64,000 bases of DNA. It comes from Carpediemonas membranifera BICM. Its lineage: Eukaryota > Protista > Fornicata. Within the stretch, counting starts at the first letter, position 1. Every line of letters begins with the position of its first letter. The stretch is taken from the NCBI GenBank assembly GCA_019828565.1, contig JAHDYR010000030.1:112484-176483 (forward strand), in the 5' to 3' direction. A program made the translations under genes and the position numbers. Shown here piece by piece: positions 8,616 through 23,911 of this stretch. The notes beneath the pieces were generated by a model. It ran no database searches. It was not told the DNA's origin and saw nothing but the letters and a program-made list of their open reading frames with translations.

Positions 8616-8989
8616 ACTGAGGGGTGTTTATGTATGCTTGGCTGAGGTCGACATAAATAAGTCAAGGCGGGCAGTGTCCATCTGGTAGCAAGGTCAGATG
8701 GTTTTATGAGGCGAGTTAGTCAGCTGGGCACTAACATTCATCCGCTTGATTCATGTGATAACCACCCCACTGATATGTGCAGGTCCCACGGGGTCGCCTC
8801 AGTGCTTCACTGGTATCGAGCACGGTCTGCACTTGATCTGTCTGCTTCTACATTCGTCGACCCGTGTGCCAACAGTCATACCAACAACACCATCGTGCTC
8901 ATCATCATCAGGAAAACATCGCCTAAGTCAACCCGGGCCACCTCAGACCGATGACATGATAACAACGTTGGTTTACTCTCCGATCAGTC

Positions 8990-11353
8990 TTAATGAGCGC
9001 CACAGGTACAGACGTGACCCTCAGAGCCGCACGTACAGATCTCGCCGCGCCCGCAGGTGCAAGGCTTCGGCGCGACTACAGCAGACTTGCCACAAGTGCA
9101 GACGTGACCCTCAGAGCCGCACGTACAGATCTCGCCGCGCCCGCAGGTGCAAGGCTTCGGCGCGACTACAGCAGACTTGCCACAAGTGCAGACGTGACCC
9201 TCAGAGCCGCACGTACAGATCTCGCCGCGCCCGCAGGTGCAAGGCTTCGGCGCGACTACAGCAGACTTGCCACAAGTGCAGACGTGACCCTCAGAGCCGC
9301 ACGTACAGATCTCGCCGCGCCCGCAGGTGCAAGGCTTCGGCGCGACTACAGCAGACTTGCCACAAGTGCAGACGTGACCCTCAGAGCCGCACGTACAGAT
9401 CTCGCCGCGCCCGCAGGTGCAAGGCTTCGGCGCGACTACAGCAGACTTGCCACAAGTGCAGACGTGACCCTCAGAGCCGCACGTACAGATCTCGCCGCGC
9501 CCGCAGGTGCAAGGCTTCGGCGCGACTACAGCAGACTTGCCACAAGTGCAGACGTGACCCTCAGAGCCGCACGTACAGATCTCGCCGCGCCCGCAGGTGC
9601 AAGGCTTCGGCGCGACTACAGCAGACTTGCCACAAGTGCAGACGTGACCCTCAGAGCCGCACGTACAGATCTCGCCGCGCCCGCAGGTGCAAGGCTTCGG
9701 CGCGACTACAGCAGACTTGCCACAAGTGCAGACGTGACCCTCAGAGCCGCACGTACAGATCTCGCCGCGCCCGCAGGTGCAAGGCTTCGGCGCGACTACA
9801 GCAGACTTGCCACAAGTGCAGACGTGACCCTCAGAGCCGCACGTACAGATCTCGCCGCGCCCGCAGGTGCAAGGCTTCGGCGCGACTACAGCAGACTTGC
9901 CACAAGTGCAGACGTGACCCTCAGAGCCGCACGTACAGATCTCGCCGCGCCCGCAGGTGCAAGGCTTCGGCGCGACTACAGCAGACTTGCCACAAGTGCA
10001 GACGTGACCCTCAGAGCCGCACGTACAGATCTCGCCGCGCCCGCAGGTGCAAGGCTTCGGCGCGACTACAGCAGACTTGCCACAAGTGCAGACGTGACCC
10101 TCAGAGCCGCACGTACAGATCTCGCCGCGCCCGCAGGTGCAAGGCTTCGGCGCGACTACAGCAGACTTGCCACAAGTGCAGACGTGACCCTCAGAGCCGC
10201 ACGTACAGATCTCGCCGCGCCCGCAGGTGCAAGGCTTCGGCGCGACTACAGCAGACTTGCCACAAGTGCAGACGTGACCCTCAGAGCCGCACGTACAGAT
10301 CTCGCCGCGCCCGCAGGTGCAAGGCTTCGGCGCGACTACAGCAGACTTGCCACAAGTGCAGACGTGACCCTCAGAGCCGCACGTACAGATCTCGCCGCGC
10401 CCGCAGGTGCAAGGCTTCGGCGCGACTACAGCAGACTTGCCACAAGTGCAGACGTGACCCTCAGAGCCGCACGTACAGATCTCGCCGCGCCCGCAGGTGC
10501 AAGGCTTCGGCGCGACTACAGCAGACTTGCCACAAGTGCAGACGTGACCCTCAGAGCCGCACGTACAGATCTCGCCGCGCCCGCAGGTGCAAGGCTTCGG
10601 CGCGACTACAGCAGACTTGCCACAAGTGCAGACGTGACCCTCAGAGCCGCACGTACAGATCTCGCCGCGCCCGCAGGTGCAAGGCTTCGGCGCGACTACA
10701 GCAGACTTGCCACAAGTGCAGACGTGACCCTCAGAGCCGCACGTACAGATCTCGCCGCGCCCGCAGGTGCAAGGCTTCGGCGCGACTACAGCAGACTTGC
10801 CACAAGTGCAGACGTGACCCTCAGAGCCGCACGTACAGATCTCGCCGCGCCCGCAGGTGCAAGGCTTCGGCGCGACTACAGCAGACTTGCCACAAGTGCA
10901 GACGTGACCCTCAGAGCCGCACGTACAGATCTCGCCGCGCCCGCAGGTGCAAGGCTTCGGCGCGACTACAGCAGACTTGCCACAAGTGCAGACGTGACCC
11001 TCAGAGCCGCACGTACAGATCTCGCCGCGCCCGCAGGTGCAAGGCTTCGGCGCGACTACAGCAGACTTGCCACAAGTGCAGACGTGACCCTCAGAGCCGC
11101 ACGTACAGATCTCGCCGCGCCCGCAGGTGCAAGGCTTCGGCGCGACTACAGCAGACTTGCCACAAGTGCAGACGTGACCCTCAGAGCCGCACGTACAGAT
11201 CTCGCCGCGCCCGCAGGTGCAAGGCTTCGGCGCTTCATCCGCAGCACTCTTCTTACAGGAACAGAAACCGCCACAGCTGCCGCCGCATGTTTTCTTGGTT
11301 ACTGGCTCAAATTCAAAGACATTATCGATCGTCACAGTGTTCTTTCCACTCAT
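8990..11353 (-). CDS. Giant Cys-rich tandem-repeat protein, putative multidomain metallothionein (787 aa, 154 Cys)
   Basis: ATG with unique 43-aa head, then 25 copies of PCTCGRGEICTCGSEGHVCTCG(KSAVVAPK); the two substitutions in the conserved part of the terminal repeat are synonymous in this frame; AGTAAA on the minus strand at 8972-8977 just after the stop. Confidence 0.8.
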   Translation of the reverse strand: MSGKNTVTIDNVFEFEPVTKKTCGGSCGGFCSCKKSAADEAPKPCTCGRGEICTCGSEGHVCTCGKSAVVAPKPCTCGRGEICTCGSEGHVCTCGKSAVVAPKPCTCGRGEICTCGSEGHVCTCGKSAVVAPKPCTCGRGEICTCGSEGHVCTCGKSAVVAPKPCTCGRGEICTCGSEGHVCTCGKSAVVAPKPCTCGRGEICTCGSEGHVCTCGKSAVVAPKPCTCGRGEICTCGSEGHVCTCGKSAVVAPKPCTCGRGEICTCGSEGHVCTCGKSAVVAPKPCTCGRGEICTCGSEGHVCTCGKSAVVAPKPCTCGRGEICTCGSEGHVCTCGKSAVVAPKPCTCGRGEICTCGSEGHVCTCGKSAVVAPKPCTCGRGEICTCGSEGHVCTCGKSAVVAPKPCTCGRGEICTCGSEGHVCTCGKSAVVAPKPCTCGRGEICTCGSEGHVCTCGKSAVVAPKPCTCGRGEICTCGSEGHVCTCGKSAVVAPKPCTCGRGEICTCGSEGHVCTCGKSAVVAPKPCTCGRGEICTCGSEGHVCTCGKSAVVAPKPCTCGRGEICTCGSEGHVCTCGKSAVVAPKPCTCGRGEICTCGSEGHVCTCGKSAVVAPKPCTCGRGEICTCGSEGHVCTCGKSAVVAPKPCTCGRGEICTCGSEGHVCTCGKSAVVAPKPCTCGRGEICTCGSEGHVCTCGKSAVVAPKPCTCGRGEICTCGSEGHVCTCGKSAVVAPKPCTCGRGEICTCGSEGHVCTCGKSAVVAPKPCTCGRGEICTCGSEGHVCTCGAH
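8999..11233. repeat. Tandem array of a 90-bp unit, about 25 copies, internally identical
   Basis: Unit cacaagtgcagacgtgaccctcagagccgcacgtacagatctcgccgcgcccgcaggtgcaaggcttcggcgcgactacagcagacttgc recurs every 90 nt from 9001 to 11161. Confidence 0.98.
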
Positions 11354-12044
11354 TTGGTGCTATTGCTTGTCTGGTGCCCGTGCTTTACAGCTCAGGGTCC
11401 ACAAGGCATTGTCATGGTGCCGGTACAAAACCCGCCCAGTTCAGGACCGGTTGGTGCCCCAGTAATGGGTGGATGGGGCAGTATTTGTGCTGCGGATGAC
11501 GGTACAGTGGCGCTGAAGGGTATGATTCATTCGAGAACTGATGATCGTCATCTCCGACATCACAAGCCCGGGTTCGGGGATGTTTACGAGCCGAGTCGAG
11601 AGGCTGGACGCCATAACTCAGATGGATCAGACACAATTAGGATGATTGGTATGCCTGACAGTGCAATCAGTCAGTTGTTGACCTTAGCTTCAGCTTGGAA
11701 TTACGCCAGGCTGGACCTCACTCAGGCACCCTCAGAATGAGCTCTCCGACACTACCTGGGAGTTATTTAGAACAGGCACACAGGAGTACCCCAGCACTGC
11801 CCTGCACCCGTGTGTGAGGTGTGCTGCTCCCACGACTTTTCAATGTAGCGCCGATGGGGGATTCAAGAGACTCAGTCCCACTGGATCGAGCCATATAAAT
11901 CTTGATTGCTCGGATGCTCGACTCGGAATGCGAGTTCCTGGGTTTGGCAATCAATTTACACGTATACATACCAAATGTACCGATTTGGCTAATCTGCAGG
12001 ATCTTTCATCCAAGATCCATCCGCAGCGGCTCAAGGAGTTAGCA

Positions 12045-13412
12045 ATGTTTGACGTCTTTAGCGTGTTGGAGGACCACACGCCCGAGTTCATTCTTGTCTT
12101 CCTTGTTCTTATTATCTTCGCCGCCGTCTTCGAGGCCGGCAACGAGTTCATGCACCGTGTACTCGAGCGATCCAAGCATAGATTCTTCGCCTTAATGCTG
12201 GAAAAGCTGCAGGGGGAGCTTATGACTGTCGGCGTCTTCAGTTTCGGTGTTTTCCTGCTCAACCTCGTGCTCGAGCACCAAAGTGAGTATCTCGACGCCC
12301 ACGGCATCCCGCCTGAGCAGGTCCACGCCCTGCAGGAGATCTTCGAGAGTGTGCACATCTTCATCTTCGCCTTCACCGTCATCTATCTCTTCACCCTTCT
12401 CATACTATATCTCGTCCTGCTCGGGCGACTGTGGCTCCTGTTCGCATGCTGGAGGCCGTACATGAACGAGCTATCCCCAGTGAGTTTGGACATCGGCAAG
12501 ATCGCCGCCACCCCTCACTGGAAGCGGAGGGTTCTCTTTCTCGACTGTGCTGTCAAGACCGGGCTGGTCCGACTCCATCTGACTCGGGTCAGGCCAGATC
12601 TGGCCTTTAGATCCATGTCTGAGATGCTCACCTCCTCTACCCAGATCCTTATAATGCACAGTGCTGATCTCAGTATGTCCTTCTGGACGAGCGCCCTCAC
12701 CGCGATCATCACCATCGGGTCTCTGTTGAATAACAGCTCGTCCTTCCTGGTGATCTCTGGCGTTCTCACGTTGACCACTGTACTTCCCAAGCTCTTCCTT
12801 TTTATCCCAGAATTCCGGCAATCCTTCACGGCCGACTCCTTCTTCATGACTGAGCGTGTCAGGCGGAAGAAGAAGGCCGTATTTGAGCCTGCCGCTATCC
12901 CACTCAACTCTGACTTCAACCCCATTTTCAACGCCATTCATCTTGGGAGTGATGGTGCAGAGGGCATTCCGATCAAAGTCACCGATACAGCTCCTGAAGA
13001 CAAGTGGCCCATAGAGCAGGAAAGCATCCCATATGCCCTTGAGGACGAGGCCAGGGCTGTGTGTCTTGTCAGGGCCGGCCGGGTTGAGGGGGGCCGCCTG
13101 GTGGTGACCAGGCCTGGCGGACCACGGGTGCTGAAGGGTGTGGTCCACTGGTGGTCATCCCGGAAGGTCCGTGCGGTGCTGACCTCTCACACGGCCGTCT
13201 GCACCCTCGCCGTTTCCATCCTGACGACAGTGGTCGACCCCAAGGCCATGGCATTCCTGGTCATTGTCAGTGGTGCGTCACTGGTCTTGACAATGACCAT
13301 GGTGGTCACTATACCCTCGACCGCGGTGGTGTACGCGGTCGGGTCAAGCAGCACATTTAGGGAGCTGGTCGTGGCCTTAAAGAAGGAGCAGCGGGAAGCA
13401 GAGCACGCTTAG
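12045..13412 (+). CDS. MLO-like multipass membrane protein
   Basis: VLIIFAAVFEAG...LMLEKLQGELMTVGVFSF and FESVHIFIF match MLO TM1-TM3 signatures (LEKIKxELMLLGFISLLL; LHIFIF); about 7 hydrophobic segments. Confidence 0.7.
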   Translation: MFDVFSVLEDHTPEFILVFLVLIIFAAVFEAGNEFMHRVLERSKHRFFALMLEKLQGELMTVGVFSFGVFLLNLVLEHQSEYLDAHGIPPEQVHALQEIFESVHIFIFAFTVIYLFTLLILYLVLLGRLWLLFACWRPYMNELSPVSLDIGKIAATPHWKRRVLFLDCAVKTGLVRLHLTRVRPDLAFRSMSEMLTSSTQILIMHSADLSMSFWTSALTAIITIGSLLNNSSSFLVISGVLTLTTVLPKLFLFIPEFRQSFTADSFFMTERVRRKKKAVFEPAAIPLNSDFNPIFNAIHLGSDGAEGIPIKVTDTAPEDKWPIEQESIPYALEDEARAVCLVRAGRVEGGRLVVTRPGGPRVLKGVVHWWSSRKVRAVLTSHTAVCTLAVSILTTVVDPKAMAFLVIVSGASLVLTMTMVVTIPSTAVVYAVGSSSTFRELVVALKKEQREAEHA

Positions 13413-13496
13413 GGAATAGGGCTATAAACTAGCATGTTAGTCGACTGGTGGCCCGGCTGAGGTGCTCGATCGGACGACTCGGCAAAATTCCCGACG

Positions 13497-15158
13497 ATGT
13501 CTGTTGGGCGCGCGGCGGCGCGTACCGGGCTTCCTGTGGAGGTAGAGATGTCTATACGGGATATAGAACGTATACGGCAGATAGCAACCGCCATCTCTGC
13601 TCTGGCGTCGTCAACGGAGAGCATGAGCTCCGTTATCCCCAGAGAGGTCACGGCGATGATCCGAAGTGCGTGCAGTGCGCTTCCCCATCCACCGTACTTC
13701 AGCACGATGTCCGTCACCACCGCCTCCGACCTCCTTGCCGAGCTCACCGCCATCATCACGGACCTTGCTACCGTCCTCGCCGACCAGATCAGACGAGACG
13801 CTGCAGACACCCACAACGAGCCACTCAAGCTCGCCATGCACCGTCTGAAGTCGGCCAGGGAGTGCATCACCGAGACCATGCCAAGCTGTTCGGACGCCAC
13901 CCTGCACGGCCTTCTCACATGGACCCTGGGCGCGGTACTGCTGGCCGCAGACGATGGATTAGACCCTGCCACACGGTTCATGTGCCGCAAGTTTGCCGTG
14001 GTCGACCGTGAGATCGCGAGAGACTCTGTAGTACAGCTCCGGAGGGGGACTCGGTTTACGGTGTTCAACGCACGGATTTTCGTGGAAGGAATGAATGATT
14101 GTGGGCAGGCAGGAGTTGGATACAAGTCAGATACAATCGGACTGACTTGGATCCGACTGTATCCAATTATCCGATTTGATTCGTATATATCCGAGTCAGA
14201 GGGCCTTGTCAATATCGCCCACACAACCCACGGCCTCTTTGCCTGGGGCTCCAACCGGTGTGGGAGTCTGGGTGTCAACTCGCTGCTCCCTTGGATCAAG
14301 GCCCCCACACCCATGTCTCTGCCTGACCTTATAGTGCACTGTCTGCATGCATTAAGGTATGGTCGGACGTACTTTCAGACGTCTGAGGGCTGGTGTGCGG
14401 CTGGGAACAATGCATTCGGCTCCCTTGGTGTTGGCGTGGAAGATGGTGAGGACGGTGGTTGTGTTCAAGAGCCCCTGATGGTCGACCTCAGCGGGGCTGA
14501 CATCCACTCGTTCCACTCATTCGAACGGGCCGTGTTCGTCAGCACTAGGACGGCGAGCACGCCTCTACTGGCTGCTGGTGACAACCGGGCCGGGGCACTG
14601 GGAATAGGGTCCATGATGGCAACGGAGGAGGTGTTCGCCCGGGTCTGTCTGCCGGCTGGGCTGAAGATTACTGATATTATTCCGTTTGAGGGTGTCACTC
14701 TCATCTTCAGCGGCTATCAGTGCTTCTACATCGGCACCCAAGCTGCATTTGCCGGAGATTTCTCCCCCACCGACACACCATCCAGGTCACCCCGCCGCTT
14801 CCCACTGCGGGTGTCGGCAGTGCTCACGGCCCCCTGCTCGAACGCGGTCTTCGTCTTTCTCAGCGAGGGCCGTCTCCTCACCGCATGGACTCGCCCGCCA
14901 CAGACTCTGAGCGGGGCCGTGCGCCACCCGTCAGAGGTGCCGTGGCTCTCGGAGTTCTCAATGCCGTCTGAGGTGTTCCACATTCATACCGAGTCCCACC
15001 AGCTCCACTACAGCTACGACAGGGGCTGGGCGATCGTCCATGAGCGGGGGTCGGTGGCAGAGGCGAGGGGAGACCCAGCCATCGTGTTCTGGGCTAGTAA
15101 TGTCGCGACACCTGAGAGAATGCTCCCACTGAGGGCGAGGTACCTCGATAACTACTGA
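13497..15158 (+). CDS. RCC1/BLIP-II-like repeat protein with helical N-terminus (lineage-expanded family)
   Basis: GLFAWGSNRCGSLG, AAGNNAFGSLG, AAGDNRAGALG RCC1-type repeats; AGTAAA at 15190. Confidence 0.75.
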   Translation: MSVGRAAARTGLPVEVEMSIRDIERIRQIATAISALASSTESMSSVIPREVTAMIRSACSALPHPPYFSTMSVTTASDLLAELTAIITDLATVLADQIRRDAADTHNEPLKLAMHRLKSARECITETMPSCSDATLHGLLTWTLGAVLLAADDGLDPATRFMCRKFAVVDREIARDSVVQLRRGTRFTVFNARIFVEGMNDCGQAGVGYKSDTIGLTWIRLYPIIRFDSYISESEGLVNIAHTTHGLFAWGSNRCGSLGVNSLLPWIKAPTPMSLPDLIVHCLHALRYGRTYFQTSEGWCAAGNNAFGSLGVGVEDGEDGGCVQEPLMVDLSGADIHSFHSFERAVFVSTRTASTPLLAAGDNRAGALGIGSMMATEEVFARVCLPAGLKITDIIPFEGVTLIFSGYQCFYIGTQAAFAGDFSPTDTPSRSPRRFPLRVSAVLTAPCSNAVFVFLSEGRLLTAWTRPPQTLSGAVRHPSEVPWLSEFSMPSEVFHIHTESHQLHYSYDRGWAIVHERGSVAEARGDPAIVFWASNVATPERMLPLRARYLDNY

Positions 15159-18901: not shown

Positions 18902-19064
18902 GTCTTTCCTTTAGTGACATGCGATTTTTAAGATATTTTTTAAAGCGATCGTTAGGGTTTCTCAGCCTAGGGCGGATTGACTTGGTGGGCAGTCACAGGT
19001 TGACCTGAGAGCGCGCTGAGACGGCTGCAAGAAAAAAAGTCGACACGATAACCGAACAACATTG

Positions 19065-22000
19065 ATGGCCAAAAACAAGGGGCGCAGCCGCCGCAAGTCT
19101 GCTCAGCAGCGCAAGCGTTCAAATTCAACAGCAGTTCCAGCCGATAAGCCAGAACTGAAGGAGCACGCTCCTGTTGTTGAAGTACCCGCGGAAACCAAGT
19201 ATGACGGCGACGAAACCACGAACGAAGCCATCTCGGATGATGAAGTTGAGAACCACGCTTCTCCCAACAAGGAGGAGCTCATCGAGCCGATTGAAGAAGA
19301 GACCGCCGCCGAGGAGACCAAGCCCGAGGAGGCCGCCGTCGAGGAGCCTGCCGTCGAGGAGGCCGCCGCCGAGGAGACCAAGCCCGAGGAGACCGCCGTC
19401 GAGGAGGCCAAGCCCGAGGAGGCCAAGCCCGAGGAGGCCGCCGTCGAGGAGCCTGCCGTCGAGGAGGCCGCCGCCGAGGAGACCGCCGTCGAGGAGGCCA
19501 AGCCCGAGGAGACCGCCGTCGAGGAGACCGCCGTCGAGGAGCCTGCCGTCGAGGAGGCCAAGCCCGAGGAGGCCGCCGTCGAGGAGCCTGCCGTCGAGGA
19601 GGCCAAGCCCGAGGAGGCCAAGCCCGAGGAGACCGCCGTCGAGGAGCCTGCCGTCGAGGAGGCCAAGCCCGAGGAGGCCGCCGTCGAGGAGCCTGCCGTC
19701 GAGGAGGCCGCCGCCGAGGAGACCGCCGTCGAGGAGCCTGCCGTCGAGGAGGCCAAGCCCGAGGAGGCCGCCGTCGAGGAGCCTGCCGTCGAGGAGGCCG
19801 CCGCCGAGGAGACCAAGCCCGAGGAGACCGCCGTCGAGGAGGCCAAGCCCGAGGAGACCGCCGTCGAGGAGGCCAAGCCCGAGGAGACCGCCGTCGAGGA
19901 GCCTGCCGTCGAGGAGGCCAAGCCCGAGGAGGCCGCCGTCGAGGAGCCTGCCGTCGAGGAGGCCGCCGCCGAGGAGACCGCCGTCGAGGAGCCTGCCGTC
20001 GAGGAGGCCAAGCCCGAGGAGGCCAAGCCCGAGGAGACCGCCGTCGAGGAGCCTGCCGTCGAGGAGGCCGCCGTCGAGGAGGCCGCCGTCGAAGAGCCTG
20101 CCGTCGAGGAGGCCAAGCCCGAGGAGGCCGCCGTCGAGGAGCCTGCCGTCGAGGAGGCCGCCGCCGAGGAGACCGCCGTCGAGGAGCCTGCCGTCGAGGA
20201 GCCTGCCGTCGAGGAGGCCAAGCCCGAGGAGACCGCCGCCGAGGAGACCGCCGTCGAAGAGCCTGCCGTCGAGGAGGCCAAGCCCGAGGAGGCCGCCGTC
20301 GAGGAGCCTGCCGTCGAGGAGGCCGCCGCCGAGGAGACCGCCGTCGAAGAGACCGCCGTCGAGGAGGCCAAGCCCGAGGAGGCCAAGCCCGAGGAGACCG
20401 CCGTCGAGGAGCCTGCCGTCGAGGAGGCCGCCGTCGAGGAGGCCGCCGCCGAGGAGACCAAGCCCGAGGAGACCGCCGTCGAAGAGCCTGCCGTCGAGGA
20501 GGCCAAGCCCGAGGAGACCGCCGTCGAGGAGACCGCCGTCGAAGAGCCTGCCGTCGAGGAGGCCAAGCCCGAGGAGACCGCCGCCGAGGAGACCGCCGTC
20601 GAAGAGCCTGCCGTCGAGGAGGCCAAGCCCGAGGAGGCCGCCGTCGAGGAGCCTGCCGTCGAGGAGGCCGCCGCCGAGGAGACCAAGCCCGAGGAGCCTG
20701 CCGTCGAGGAGGCCAAGCCCGAGGAGACCGCCGTCGAGGAGCCTGCCGTCGAGGAGCCTGCCGTCGAGGAGGCCAAGCCCGAGGAGACCGCCGTCGAGGA
20801 GGCCAAGCCCGAGGAGGCCGCCGTCGAGGAGGCCGCCGTCGAAGAGCCTGCCGTCGAGGAGGCCAAGCCCGAGGAGACCGCCGTCGAGAGCCTGCCGTCG
20901 AGGAGGCCGCCGTCGAGAGGCCGCCGCCGAGCGAGGAGACCGCCGTCGAAGAGCCTGCCGTCGAGGAGGCCAAGCCCGAGGAGACCGCCGTCGAGGAGAC
21001 CGCCGTCGAAGAGCCTGCCGTCGAGGAGGCCAAGCCCGAGGAGACCGCCGCCGAGGAGACCGCCGTCGAAGAGCCTGCCGTCGAGGAGGCCAAGCCCGAG
21101 GAGGCCGCCGTCGAGGAGCCTGCCGTCGAGGAGGCCGCCGCCGAGGAGACCAAGCCCGAGGAGCCTGCCGTCGAGGAGGCCAAGCCCGAGGAGACCGCCG
21201 TCGAGGAGCCTGCCGTCGAGGAGCCTGCCGTCGAGGAGGCCAAGCCCGAGGAGACCGCCGTCGAGGAGCCTGCCGTCGAGGAGGCCGCCGCCGAGGAGAC
21301 CAAGCCCGAGGAGACCGCCGTCGAGAGCCTGCCGTCGAGGAGGCCAAGCCCGAGGAGACCGCCGTCGAGAGCCTGCCGTCGAGGAGGCCGCCGTCGAGGA
21401 GGCCAAGCCCGAGGAGCCTGCCGTCGAGGAGGCCAAGCCCGAGGAGGCCAAGCCCGAGGAGGCCGCCGTCGAGAGCCTGCCGTCGAGGAGGCCAAGCCCG
21501 AGGAGACCGCCGTCGAGGAGCCCGCCGTCGAGGAGCCTGCCGTCGAGGAGGCCAAGCCCGAGGAGACCGCCGCCGAGGAGACCGCCGTCGAAGAGCCTGC
21601 CGTCGAGGAGGCCAAGCCCGAGGAGGCCGCCGTCGAGGAGCCTGCCGTCGAGGAGGCCGCCGCCGAGGAGACCAAGCCCGAGGAGCCTGCCGTCGAGGAG
21701 GCCAAGCCCGAGGAGACCGCCGTCGAGGAGCCTGCCGTCGAGGAGCCTGCCGTCGAGGAGGCCAAGCCCGAGAGACCGCCGTCGAGGAGGCCGCCGTCGA
21801 GGAGGCCGCCGCCGAGGAGACCGCCGTCGAAGAGCCTGCCGTCGAGGAGGCCAAGCCCGAGGAGGCCGCCGTCGAGGAGCCTGCCGTCGAGGAGGCCGCC
21901 GCCGAGGAGACCGCCGTCGAGGAGCCTGCCGTCGAGGAGGCCAAGCCCGAGGAGGCCGCCGTCGAGGAGACCGCCGTCGAGGAGCCTGCCGTCGAGGAGG

Positions 22001-23911
22001 CCGCCGTCGAGGAGACCGCCGTCGAAGAGCCTGCCGTCGAGGAGACCAAGCCCGAGGAGACCGCCGTCGAAGAGCCTGCCGTCGAGGAGGCCAAGCCCGA
22101 GGAGACCGCCGTCGAGGAGACCGCCGTCGAGGAGGCCGCCGTCGAGAGCCGCCGTCGAGGAGGCCAAGCCCGAGGAGACCGCCGTCGAGGAGCCTGCCGT
22201 CGAGGAGGCCGCCGTCGAGGAGGCCAAGCCCGAGGAGGCCGCCGTCGAGGAGGCCAAGCCCGAGGAGGCCGCCGAGGAGACCGCCGTCGAGGAGCCTGCC
22301 GTCGAGGAGGCCAAGCCCGAGGAGGCCGCCGCCGAGGAGACCGCCGTCGAGGAGCCTGCCGTCGAGGAGGCCAAGCCCGAGGAGACCGCCGTCGAAGAGA
22401 CCGCCGTCGAGGAGGCCAAGCCCGAGGAGGCCAAGCCCGAGGAGACCGCCGTCGAAGGAGCCCGCCGTCGAGGAGGCCAAGCCCGAGGAGGCCGCCGTCG
22501 AGAGCCGCCGAGGAGCCGCCCGAGGAGGCCGCCGTCGAGGAGGCCAAGCCCGAGGAGACCGCCGTCGAGAGCCGCCGTCGAGGAGGCCAAGCCCGAGGAG
22601 GCCGCCGTCGAGGAGCCTGCCGTCGAGGAGGCCGCCGCCGAGGAGACCGCCGTCGAGGAGGCCAAGCCCGAGGAGGCCGCCGTCGAGGAGCCTGCCGTCG
22701 AGGAGGCCAAGCCCGAGGAGGCCGCCGCCGAGGAGACCGCCGTCGAGGAGGCCAAGCCCGAGGAGACCGCCGTCGAGGAGGCCAAGCCCGAGGAGGCCGC
22801 CGTCGAGGAGGCCGCCGTCGAGGAGGCCGCCGCCGAGGAGACCAAGCCCGAGGAGGCCGCCGTCGAGGAGCCTGCCGTCGACTCGCTTGACCTCGAGTCT
22901 GACCTGGACGAGCCTGTCGAGGTCCCCGCCGACCTCAGCCTCCAGCGTGTCGGGGAGGTCACCGACGTGGGCGCCGAGATCGCCCGCATCGAGCGGGTAC
23001 GCCTTATCCGAATCAGAGAGGAGAAGGTGCAGAGGGCCAGGGAGGACAGAGACAGGAAGAAGCGCGAGGCAGCCGAGGCGGTGCTCAAGCGGCAGCGGGA
23101 CGTCGACGCTGCTCGCACCCGCCGGGCTCTTGAGATGAGGGAGGCGTTTAAGCAGATCGAGGTCGACCGGCGGATCGAGCGGGAGCGTGCTAAGATCGAC
23201 AAGGCCATCCACGAGAGCAGCTCCCGCCGTGCCTACGTCCAGGGCCTACTAACCCGACTCCGCAACCCCACATCTGACGTCCCCGTCGAGAAGAAGCCGG
23301 TGAGAGCCAAGAAGCCCAGGGCCAGGCAGACCCCTAAGCCGGCCACCCCCGTCAAGACGCCGGTAGTGCCCCGCCTCCCCGTGTCCGTCTCCTCCGAGGA
23401 CCGCGCCAAGAGGGACGCCCAAGGACAACTCCGGTCCATCCAGGGCAACGTTGGGAGAGACAGACTCGAGGTTGAAGCGTATGACCTCGGCGCCAAGGAG
23501 GAGGAAACAGCCCTCGCCGACCTGACCCGCGGCATGCGTGACACGTACGCCCTATCCCCTGAGCAATCCCGGGCTGATAAGGAGCGGGGTCTGCAGGAGA
23601 GCAGGCTGGTGGCACAGGCAAGAAGGAAGTCGTTGCAGATGGGGGCTGAGTCAAACAGGGACTACGCGGCCAAGAAGAACAGGGCTGTGAAGGAGCTCGG
23701 GTTCCTCGAGTCGTCTCCCAGGGCGGTGAAGCCGGTCAAGACCACCCCAGTCACCCCGGAGATGATGGCCAGACCCGCCACAGCCACGTCACTCAGACAG
23801 GCGGTAACTGGCCGTCGCACCCCTGCGGCTAGCGCCCCCGGTAGCCGCATCCCATCCGCACAGGGAAGGCCGGCGACAGCTAGCGGCAAGCCTAGTGAGA
23901 GGAGCCTTTGA
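19065..23911 (+). CDS. Glu-rich pentapeptide-repeat protein with coiled-coil/basic C-terminus (frameshifted in this assembly)
   Basis: Unique N-terminus, EE(P/A/T)(AV/KP/AA) repeats whose last clean units read in frame into the 22967..23911 ORF; mostly single-base indels interrupt the array between about 20885 and 22570. Confidence 0.75.
19296..22880. repeat. Degenerate 15-bp coding minisatellite GAGGAG(GCC/ACC/CCT)(GCCGTC/AAGCCC/GCCGCC)
   Basis: Roughly 240 shuffled units over about 3.6 kb. Confidence 0.95.

Follow-up and report, generated by a model that had tools for sequence, protein, structure and literature searches.

The window analysed here, a 64,000-nt stretch of contig JAHDYR010000030.1 of Carpediemonas membranifera BICM, carries on the minus strand a complete ORF of 787 amino acids (8990–11353) with a single Met. 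The ORF opens with a unique head of 41 amino acids (11231–11353), continues through modules 1–24 of 90 bp each (9071–11230) and closes with the terminal module 25 (8990–9070), which ends in Gly-Ala-His before the stop codon. A probable polyadenylation signal, AGTAAA (8972–8977, minus strand), starts 12 nt past the stop, and a probable 5′ UTR of about 39 nt (11354–11392) precedes the start codon. The flanking genes, encoding a DUF192 protein on one side and a weakly MLO-like protein on the other, are not metal-related. The host was guessed in the earlier note to be a protist of anoxic sediment, and C. membranifera is indeed a free-living flagellate of oxygen-poor sediment. Its assembly, reported as 24.2 Mb in 69 contigs with 57.1% GC, 83x long-read and 150x short-read coverage (PMC8516963), comprised 24,237,836 bases in 69 contigs.

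The stop-free minus-strand translation contains 154 Cys (19.6%), of which 152 lie in 76 CxC motifs, 75 of them being CTC. There are 26 His and three Phe, the latter confined to the head, so that aromatics amount to 0.4%; Trp, Tyr, Leu and Gln are absent and the calculated mass is 77 kDa. Re-translation and repeat analysis thus agreed with the earlier note on the ORF, its Cys number and its 25 CxC modules. The head, for which a length of 43 residues had been given, is unique and Cys-containing as described, and its length is 41–44 residues depending on the boundary chosen, the first PKP starting at residue 42. It is composed of 22 Cys-free residues, a C-x3-C-x3-C-x-C segment and a diverged copy of the linker, making four Cys in total with the first at residue 23. 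Each module follows the formula CxC-x5-CxC-x6-CxC with one His and no Phe, Trp or Tyr, has a net charge of about +1 and is joined to the next by a Cys-free linker of Pro, Lys, Ala and Val. A hydropathy scan of the whole protein revealed no hydrophobic signal or transmembrane (TM) stretch and no hydrophobic tail (the maximal 19-residue value was 0.74). Judged from the sequence, the protein lacks hydrophobic targeting signals and would be cytosolic.

Three of the six frames are stop-free through the repeat unit, so ORF length alone proves nothing, and codon usage did not discriminate between the frames. The variation within the array was informative. Among the three CTCG sub-repeats of each unit and the fourth version found in module 25, all four variable columns fall at third-codon positions of the minus frame, and only in this frame is the peptide (CTC) conserved among the sub-repeats. 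The linker copy in the head retains Lys-Ser-Ala with Ser encoded by AGT instead of TCT and differs by an indel of one whole codon. Module 25 departs from the other modules at unit positions 63 (C>T) and 66 (T>C), after which the array ends; the claim that both changes are synonymous in the minus frame and alter residues in the two open plus frames was confirmed (S>G and A>T in one, K>R and C>Y in the other). Among 200,000 shuffled units, 33 had three CxC in any stop-free frame, which places the arrangement beyond chance. Of 22 likely genes of the window, 18 have an NRTAAA motif no further than about 50 nt from the stop, the background being 0.04 per 56 nt. The only clear poly(A) end among the reads is found about 16 nt beyond the first base of a motif of this class. 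The AGTAAA behind the stop is as described before, except that the neighbours share NRTAAA and not always AGTAAA itself. Taken together, the third-position variation, the AGT/TCT Ser codons, the silent changes in module 25 and the AGTAAA signal identify the minus frame as the gene; this frame is real and under protein-level constraint. As a side observation, NRTAAA resembles a relaxed Giardia-like poly(A) signal and is handy for calling gene strands in this genome.

Five public runs contain the region, and none from treated cultures turned up; four of them were mapped to 11141–14200, an interval that includes only one unit. All contigs were unstranded, and their RNA status was an automated guess supported by poly(A), cDNA adapters and a chimeric contig; two runs (X1 and X2) have almost the same records and seem to be a single library deposited twice. 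RNA-like contigs span the head without gaps, the main one (11205–11392) at a depth of 897 compared with 71.5 for the MLO-like neighbour. The locus is transcribed and, with due caution about contig depth, looks well expressed under ordinary culture conditions. The contigs over 11141–14200 showed no splice joints, and the gene is probably a single intronless unit. An in-frame stop is located three codons upstream of the ATG. Since upstream ATGs meet a TGA first and a possible 29-nt GT-AG intron (11388–11360) was unspliced in the contig, no N-terminal extension is expected; nor was an upstream exon seen in the contigs. At 11392, where the high-depth head contig stops, contig depth jumps from about 260 to about 900 and no plus-strand poly(A) motif is present; the best interpretation is that a dominant minus-strand mRNA has its 5′ end here, the strand being inferred from unstranded contigs. 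A 7-codon upstream ORF (11416–11393, minus strand) ends at this apparent 5′ end, near a TGTAAA at 11389. The single TGCRCNC found 450 nt upstream of the gene is within chance expectation. A contig in which 11471 is fused to contig C26 was also considered as possible trans-splicing and rejected; because of the microhomology at its junction this chimera was read as a cDNA template switch.

A second, divergent polyadenylated RNA was identified on the plus strand (11443–11910, depth 260–360) with a poly(A) loose end at 11910 and a TATAAA at 11894. Its sequence is unique, lies between the Cys-array gene and the MLO-like gene, is present in a single copy in the genome and contains a Met-initiated ORF of 92 codons (to 11740) with no Pfam match. 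Giardia has bidirectional promoters. One library has a contig spanning 11761 to 11153, where it meets an adapter; the contig crosses the head in antisense and enters module 1. The adapter is of the type used in Vertis 454 libraries (PMC4176332). In the same library the unit did not stand out in depth, perhaps as a result of normalisation or filtering. Further along, a low-depth contig (11948–12450) has a loose end rich in T at 11948, closely following a TGTAAA on the minus strand at 11960; it may represent a polyadenylated RNA that is antisense to the MLO-like gene in its 5′ part. The plus-strand signals at the array locus are best read as a weaker divergent, partly antisense RNA beside the dominant minus-strand mRNA. 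The earlier note had missed this polyadenylated RNA, which lies next to the head and overlaps part of it.

The plus strand also contains a mirror-frame ORF of 915 codons (8993–11740). It was asked whether the minus ORF might not be the main product, the locus being either a transcribed satellite or the gene for this plus-strand protein. The plus frame stays open for 129 codons beyond the minus-strand ATG, an extension recovered in 0.2–0.5% of shuffles in a post hoc test, and the cDNA contig mentioned above leads from the vicinity of a plus-strand poly(A) end into module 1. However, the informative substitutions are all synonymous only in the minus frame, AGTAAA stands behind the minus stop, the depth step at 11392 has no plus-strand poly(A) motif and the plus-frame product gave no credible family match. 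This explanation was judged highly improbable; the 915-codon ORF is probably a shadow of the minus-strand gene, and its translation is unlikely.

Tandem Repeats Finder reported one array with a period of 90, 24.8 copies, 99% matches and no indels, and modules 1–24 have no DNA differences at all. The contig representing the unit had a depth of 20,914, giving a unit/head ratio of 23.3 where 24 is expected for these 31-mers; the ratio is rough, given the coverage ramp towards the 5′ end, the two library filings and the caution due to contig depth. A value so close to expectation argues against a much shorter true array. Inflation of the array by assembly is unlikely considering this ratio and the reported 83x long-read coverage (PMC8516963), and the assembled length is probably real, consistent with the 25 modules counted before. 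The variant contigs listed for the unit had depths of 14–47 and were error-like, and a variant confined to a single unit would be hidden by the 5% threshold. The history of the array may have comprised two steps. A CTCG motif would have been triplicated into the 30-residue module, an old step to judge from the diverged synonymous sites, and the module would then have been recently amplified or homogenised to 25 copies, both array ends being spared as in unequal crossing-over or gene conversion. The gene would thus have arisen within the Carpediemonas lineage by internal duplication. The window contains another array, a Glu-rich one (19062–23138) of a 15-bp period encoding EExxx pentapeptides in about 238 copies with 75% matches, which switches frame part-way, a frameshift that is either real or due to assembly; by contrast, the Cys array is free of indels.

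No paralogue of the protein was found in the genome, in which the locus is single. A loose pattern of CxC triplets gave 81 matches in the genome against 72 in the control, that is the background rate; two matches were looked at as candidates and discarded, one being the Cys-rich region of a SET-domain protein and the other a 21-bp repeat without a long ORF in the CPC frame. Among the loci inspected, L043 (46–2250; G000:C13) encodes a protein of 734 aa in which a SET-like domain follows a Cys-rich, CXC-like region, by eye similar to Enhancer of zeste, and L019 (1241–1906; G000:C1) comprises adjacent 21-bp tandem arrays with Thr-rich, Ser-rich and Arg-rich open frames.

The exact protein is absent from a collection of 15 billion proteins, in which two of its neighbours are present. 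No homologue was obtained with the full protein or with queries of 251 and 100 aa from an index of 5.8 billion proteins, which requires shared 5-residue words and similar length and may miss diverged relatives. The four phmmer hits among 1.84 billion 50% representatives proved on inspection to be unrelated repeat or low-complexity proteins, and neither the protein and pattern searches of JGI metagenomes nor the searches of PDB sequences and ESM Atlas features returned a relative. A literature search for metallothionein and Carpediemonas gave no result. Since Cys-rich proteins that are short and evolve fast are poorly detected by such searches, the outcome indicates no close relative rather than no relative. 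Repeats were masked ahead of gene prediction in this assembly (PMC8516963), which, with neither the protein nor a relative in the collections searched, suggests that repeat-masked prediction can drop whole expressed genes. In Pfam, the whole protein had no metallothionein (MT) match and no EGF match was found; a query of three modules gave only sub-threshold MT matches (E 0.65 and 4.2), PF00131 and PF12749 reaching 10.6 vs. 23 bits and 7.9 vs. 22 bits of the gathering thresholds.

MTs are described as having 15–35% Cys and less than 10% aromatics (PMC7216689), or CxC motifs, little Trp, Tyr or Phe and typically 20–30% Cys (PMC13168519). At 19.6% Cys, the protein lies within the first range and slightly below the second, a low-end density. 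It shows the motif type of MTs (CxC, CC or CCC) and their scarcity of aromatics and, by the hydropathy scan and the contigs without an upstream exon, neither a signal peptide nor a TM segment. Its 787 residues exceed the usual MT size limit of 300 aa, as do accepted MTs of 365 and 399 aa, and its first Cys at residue 23 disagrees with the N-terminus of 3–10 aa given for animal MTs (PMC13168519). Because of the departures in size, N-terminus, Pfam score and fungal-type box, it is filed as MT-like, outside the named MT families. We consider it a cytosolic, independently evolved multimodular MT-like protein, with a probability of about 0.65.

The main competing ideas concern the state and use of the Cys residues. 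Six Cys per module could form three disulfides in each 30 residues of an EGF-like string, as in a structural or surface protein of a cyst wall, extrusome or coat, and related fornicates have large CXC/CXXC surface families (PMC3916229). Fold searches returned only disulfide-rich EGF/TNFR strings, all of them insignificant (Z ≤ 2.6; E from 0.038; TM ≤ 0.46) and derived from low-confidence models. The absence of a signal peptide, TM segment or hydrophobic tail and, in the contigs, of an upstream exon and a Cys spacing that is not EGF-like make such a protein quite unlikely. Glutathione synthesis implies a reducing cytosol in which Cys stay thiol, and the genome encodes a eukaryote-type glutamate-cysteine ligase (GCS) and three glutathione synthetases (L050, L051; G000:C39, C68, C17, C63). 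In a glutathione-containing cell, the Cys of a cytosolic protein would hence be thiols. Spironucleus, on the other hand, was reported to lack glutathione synthesis (PMC3916229). A search of the genome for phytochelatin synthase gave no match; the same search was also blank in every control genome.

Free thiols might also serve as a protein reservoir of thiol, sulfur or Cys, or as a redox buffer that takes up oxidants or sulfane sulfur under oxygen and sulfide swings, with metal only incidental. One residue in five bears sulfur, the habitat is micro-oxic, a redox role was proposed for diplomonad Cys-rich proteins (PMC3916229) and MTs themselves scavenge radicals (PMC7216689). Nevertheless, GCS and the three glutathione synthetases supply a cheaper thiol pool, and the strict CxC triplets with fixed spacings seem to exceed the needs of a thiol store; we hold this use unlikely.

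AlphaFold single-sequence models had a mean pLDDT of 59–64 and a pTM of 0.22–0.24. In every module a predicted β-hairpin joins the second and third CTC, and the linkers are of low confidence. MTs fold around their metals, and such models neither support nor refute a metal cluster. The predicted hairpins with cross-strand CTC would also suit an array of small structural zinc modules (Zn-hairpin or knuckle) acting as a scaffold or as a binder of nucleic acid or cytoskeleton instead of a metal store. The zf-CCHC score of the whole protein was over the Pfam cut-off, though with zero significant stretches, and it vanished in short pieces, which marks it as an artefact of summed repeats. With a charge of about +1 per module, no aromatic residue for a core or base stacking and 24 identical units that would offer avidity without specificity, structural zinc modules were regarded as very unlikely.

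In the preferred, MT-like reading, three CxC pairs in 20 residues without a hydrophobic core would most plausibly close round a small cluster, and each module would take up its fold, a small thiolate cluster, only with metal bound. Six Cys, possibly with the His, would suit about two Zn/Cd or about four Cu(I) per module. The MT 10d-AbiMT4 uses three Cys per divalent ion (PMC11645667) and TmMT binds about 0.7–0.8 Cu per Cys, i.e., Cu40–45 on 57 Cys (PMC4755600). By analogy with these stoichiometries, the capacity of one chain would be about 50 Zn/Cd or about 100 Cu(I) ions. Strung like beads on flexible Pro/Lys linkers, the clusters would stay independent of one another, and the likely job of the protein would be to buffer and detoxify soft metals ingested with bacterial prey and sediment. 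Comparison points both ways on metal preference: the layout recalls fungal Cu-thioneins, whereas the His recalls the Zn sites of plant type 4 MTs (PMC7216689). The K/N rule (54:2), which would suggest Cd/Zn, was set aside, since it does not hold beyond gastropods.

The locus is a transcribed orphan gene and an extreme version of a known architecture, for which likeness suggests a putative MT function. Being identical, the 24 modules would offer a clean natural system for asking whether capacity rises linearly with repeat number and what limit it reaches. If the protein binds metal, the known length of MTs would be about doubled (787 aa and 25 modules vs. 399 aa or ten domains), a record by protein length that covers the open-access literature searched, beside which longer unpublished or predicted candidates may exist. 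It would also add a further independent origin of multimodular MTs, in a lineage for which none was found described, provide a new minimal module of the 6-Cys/1-His type and lend itself to metal biosorption as a ready-made scaffold. The combined reading, in which the longest natural MT originated independently in a free-living fornicate with a new 6-Cys/1-His cluster, 50–100 ions per chain, a capacity set by expansion and contraction of a perfect 90-bp array and an overlapping antisense RNA from a divergent promoter, is tentative and, as a whole, doubtful.

The comparison with modular MTs of Cryptococcus, Tremella and tunicates made in the earlier note stands for the modular CxC architecture and not for sequence homology. 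As no homology to known MTs was detectable, the likeness is architectural and not evidence of descent. TmMT of Tremella mesenterica has 257 aa, 57 Cys and nine introns and includes 6-Cys boxes, and the fungal unit is a 7-Cys box, CxC-x5-CxC-x3-CxC-x2-C (PMC4755600). Like TmMT and CnMT1/CnMT2 of Cryptococcus neoformans, the Carpediemonas protein has tandem CxC boxes with spacers and Gly, Ala, Lys and Pro between the Cys, and it shares the first spacing, CxC-x5-CxC, with the Neurospora-type unit. In contrast to the fungal proteins, it is three times longer, with 25 modules instead of 3–8, DNA-identical units and no introns seen, and its module contains six Cys and a His, a second spacer of x6 and no seventh Cys.

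Members of the Fornicata possess many Cys-rich CXC/CXXC proteins that are not MTs, such as VSP, HCMP and HCP of Giardia and CRMP-1, CRMP-2 and CRP of Spironucleus (PMC3916229). The protein resembles them in its CXC motifs and more than 10% Cys. VSP and CRMP, however, are membrane proteins of large families with mostly CXXC motifs and a C-terminal TM segment, which in the VSP/HCMP and CRMP types comes with or without a signature tail, whereas the present protein is single-copy, TM-less and built of perfect repeats with CxC only; assignment to this surface type was rejected, only the residual 'over 10% Cys' bin being suitable.

Very long MT-like chains produced by tandem duplication are known from tunicates, namely OdiMT2 of Oikopleura with 399 aa, 123 Cys and six repeat units, varying from three to seven among populations (PMC8283569), and BscMT1 of Botryllus with 365 aa, 105 Cys and nine repeats (PMC8476144). 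OdiMT2 is the longest in the open-access literature searched, in agreement with the previous claim that the protein exceeds the known multimodular MTs. The tunicate proteins have 12-Cys domains, 29–31% Cys and a shown Cd preference, in contrast to the 6-Cys modules and 19.6% Cys found here, and there is no homology; the copy number of OdiMT2 differs among populations, which illustrates the kind of variation proposed for the present array in the earlier note, while the Carpediemonas array is known from one strain. In the snail Alinda biplicata, 10d-AbiMT4 exceeds 300 aa, consists of nine β-3 domains and one β-1 domain and binds about 30 Cd, the repeats of long MTs acting as autonomous domains (PMC11645667). 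The two proteins are alike in having many near-identical internal repeats and a distinct terminal unit, and differ in that 10d-AbiMT4 has ten domains of nine Cys with the distinct one C-terminal, whereas the Carpediemonas protein has 25 modules and its distinct domain is N-terminal.
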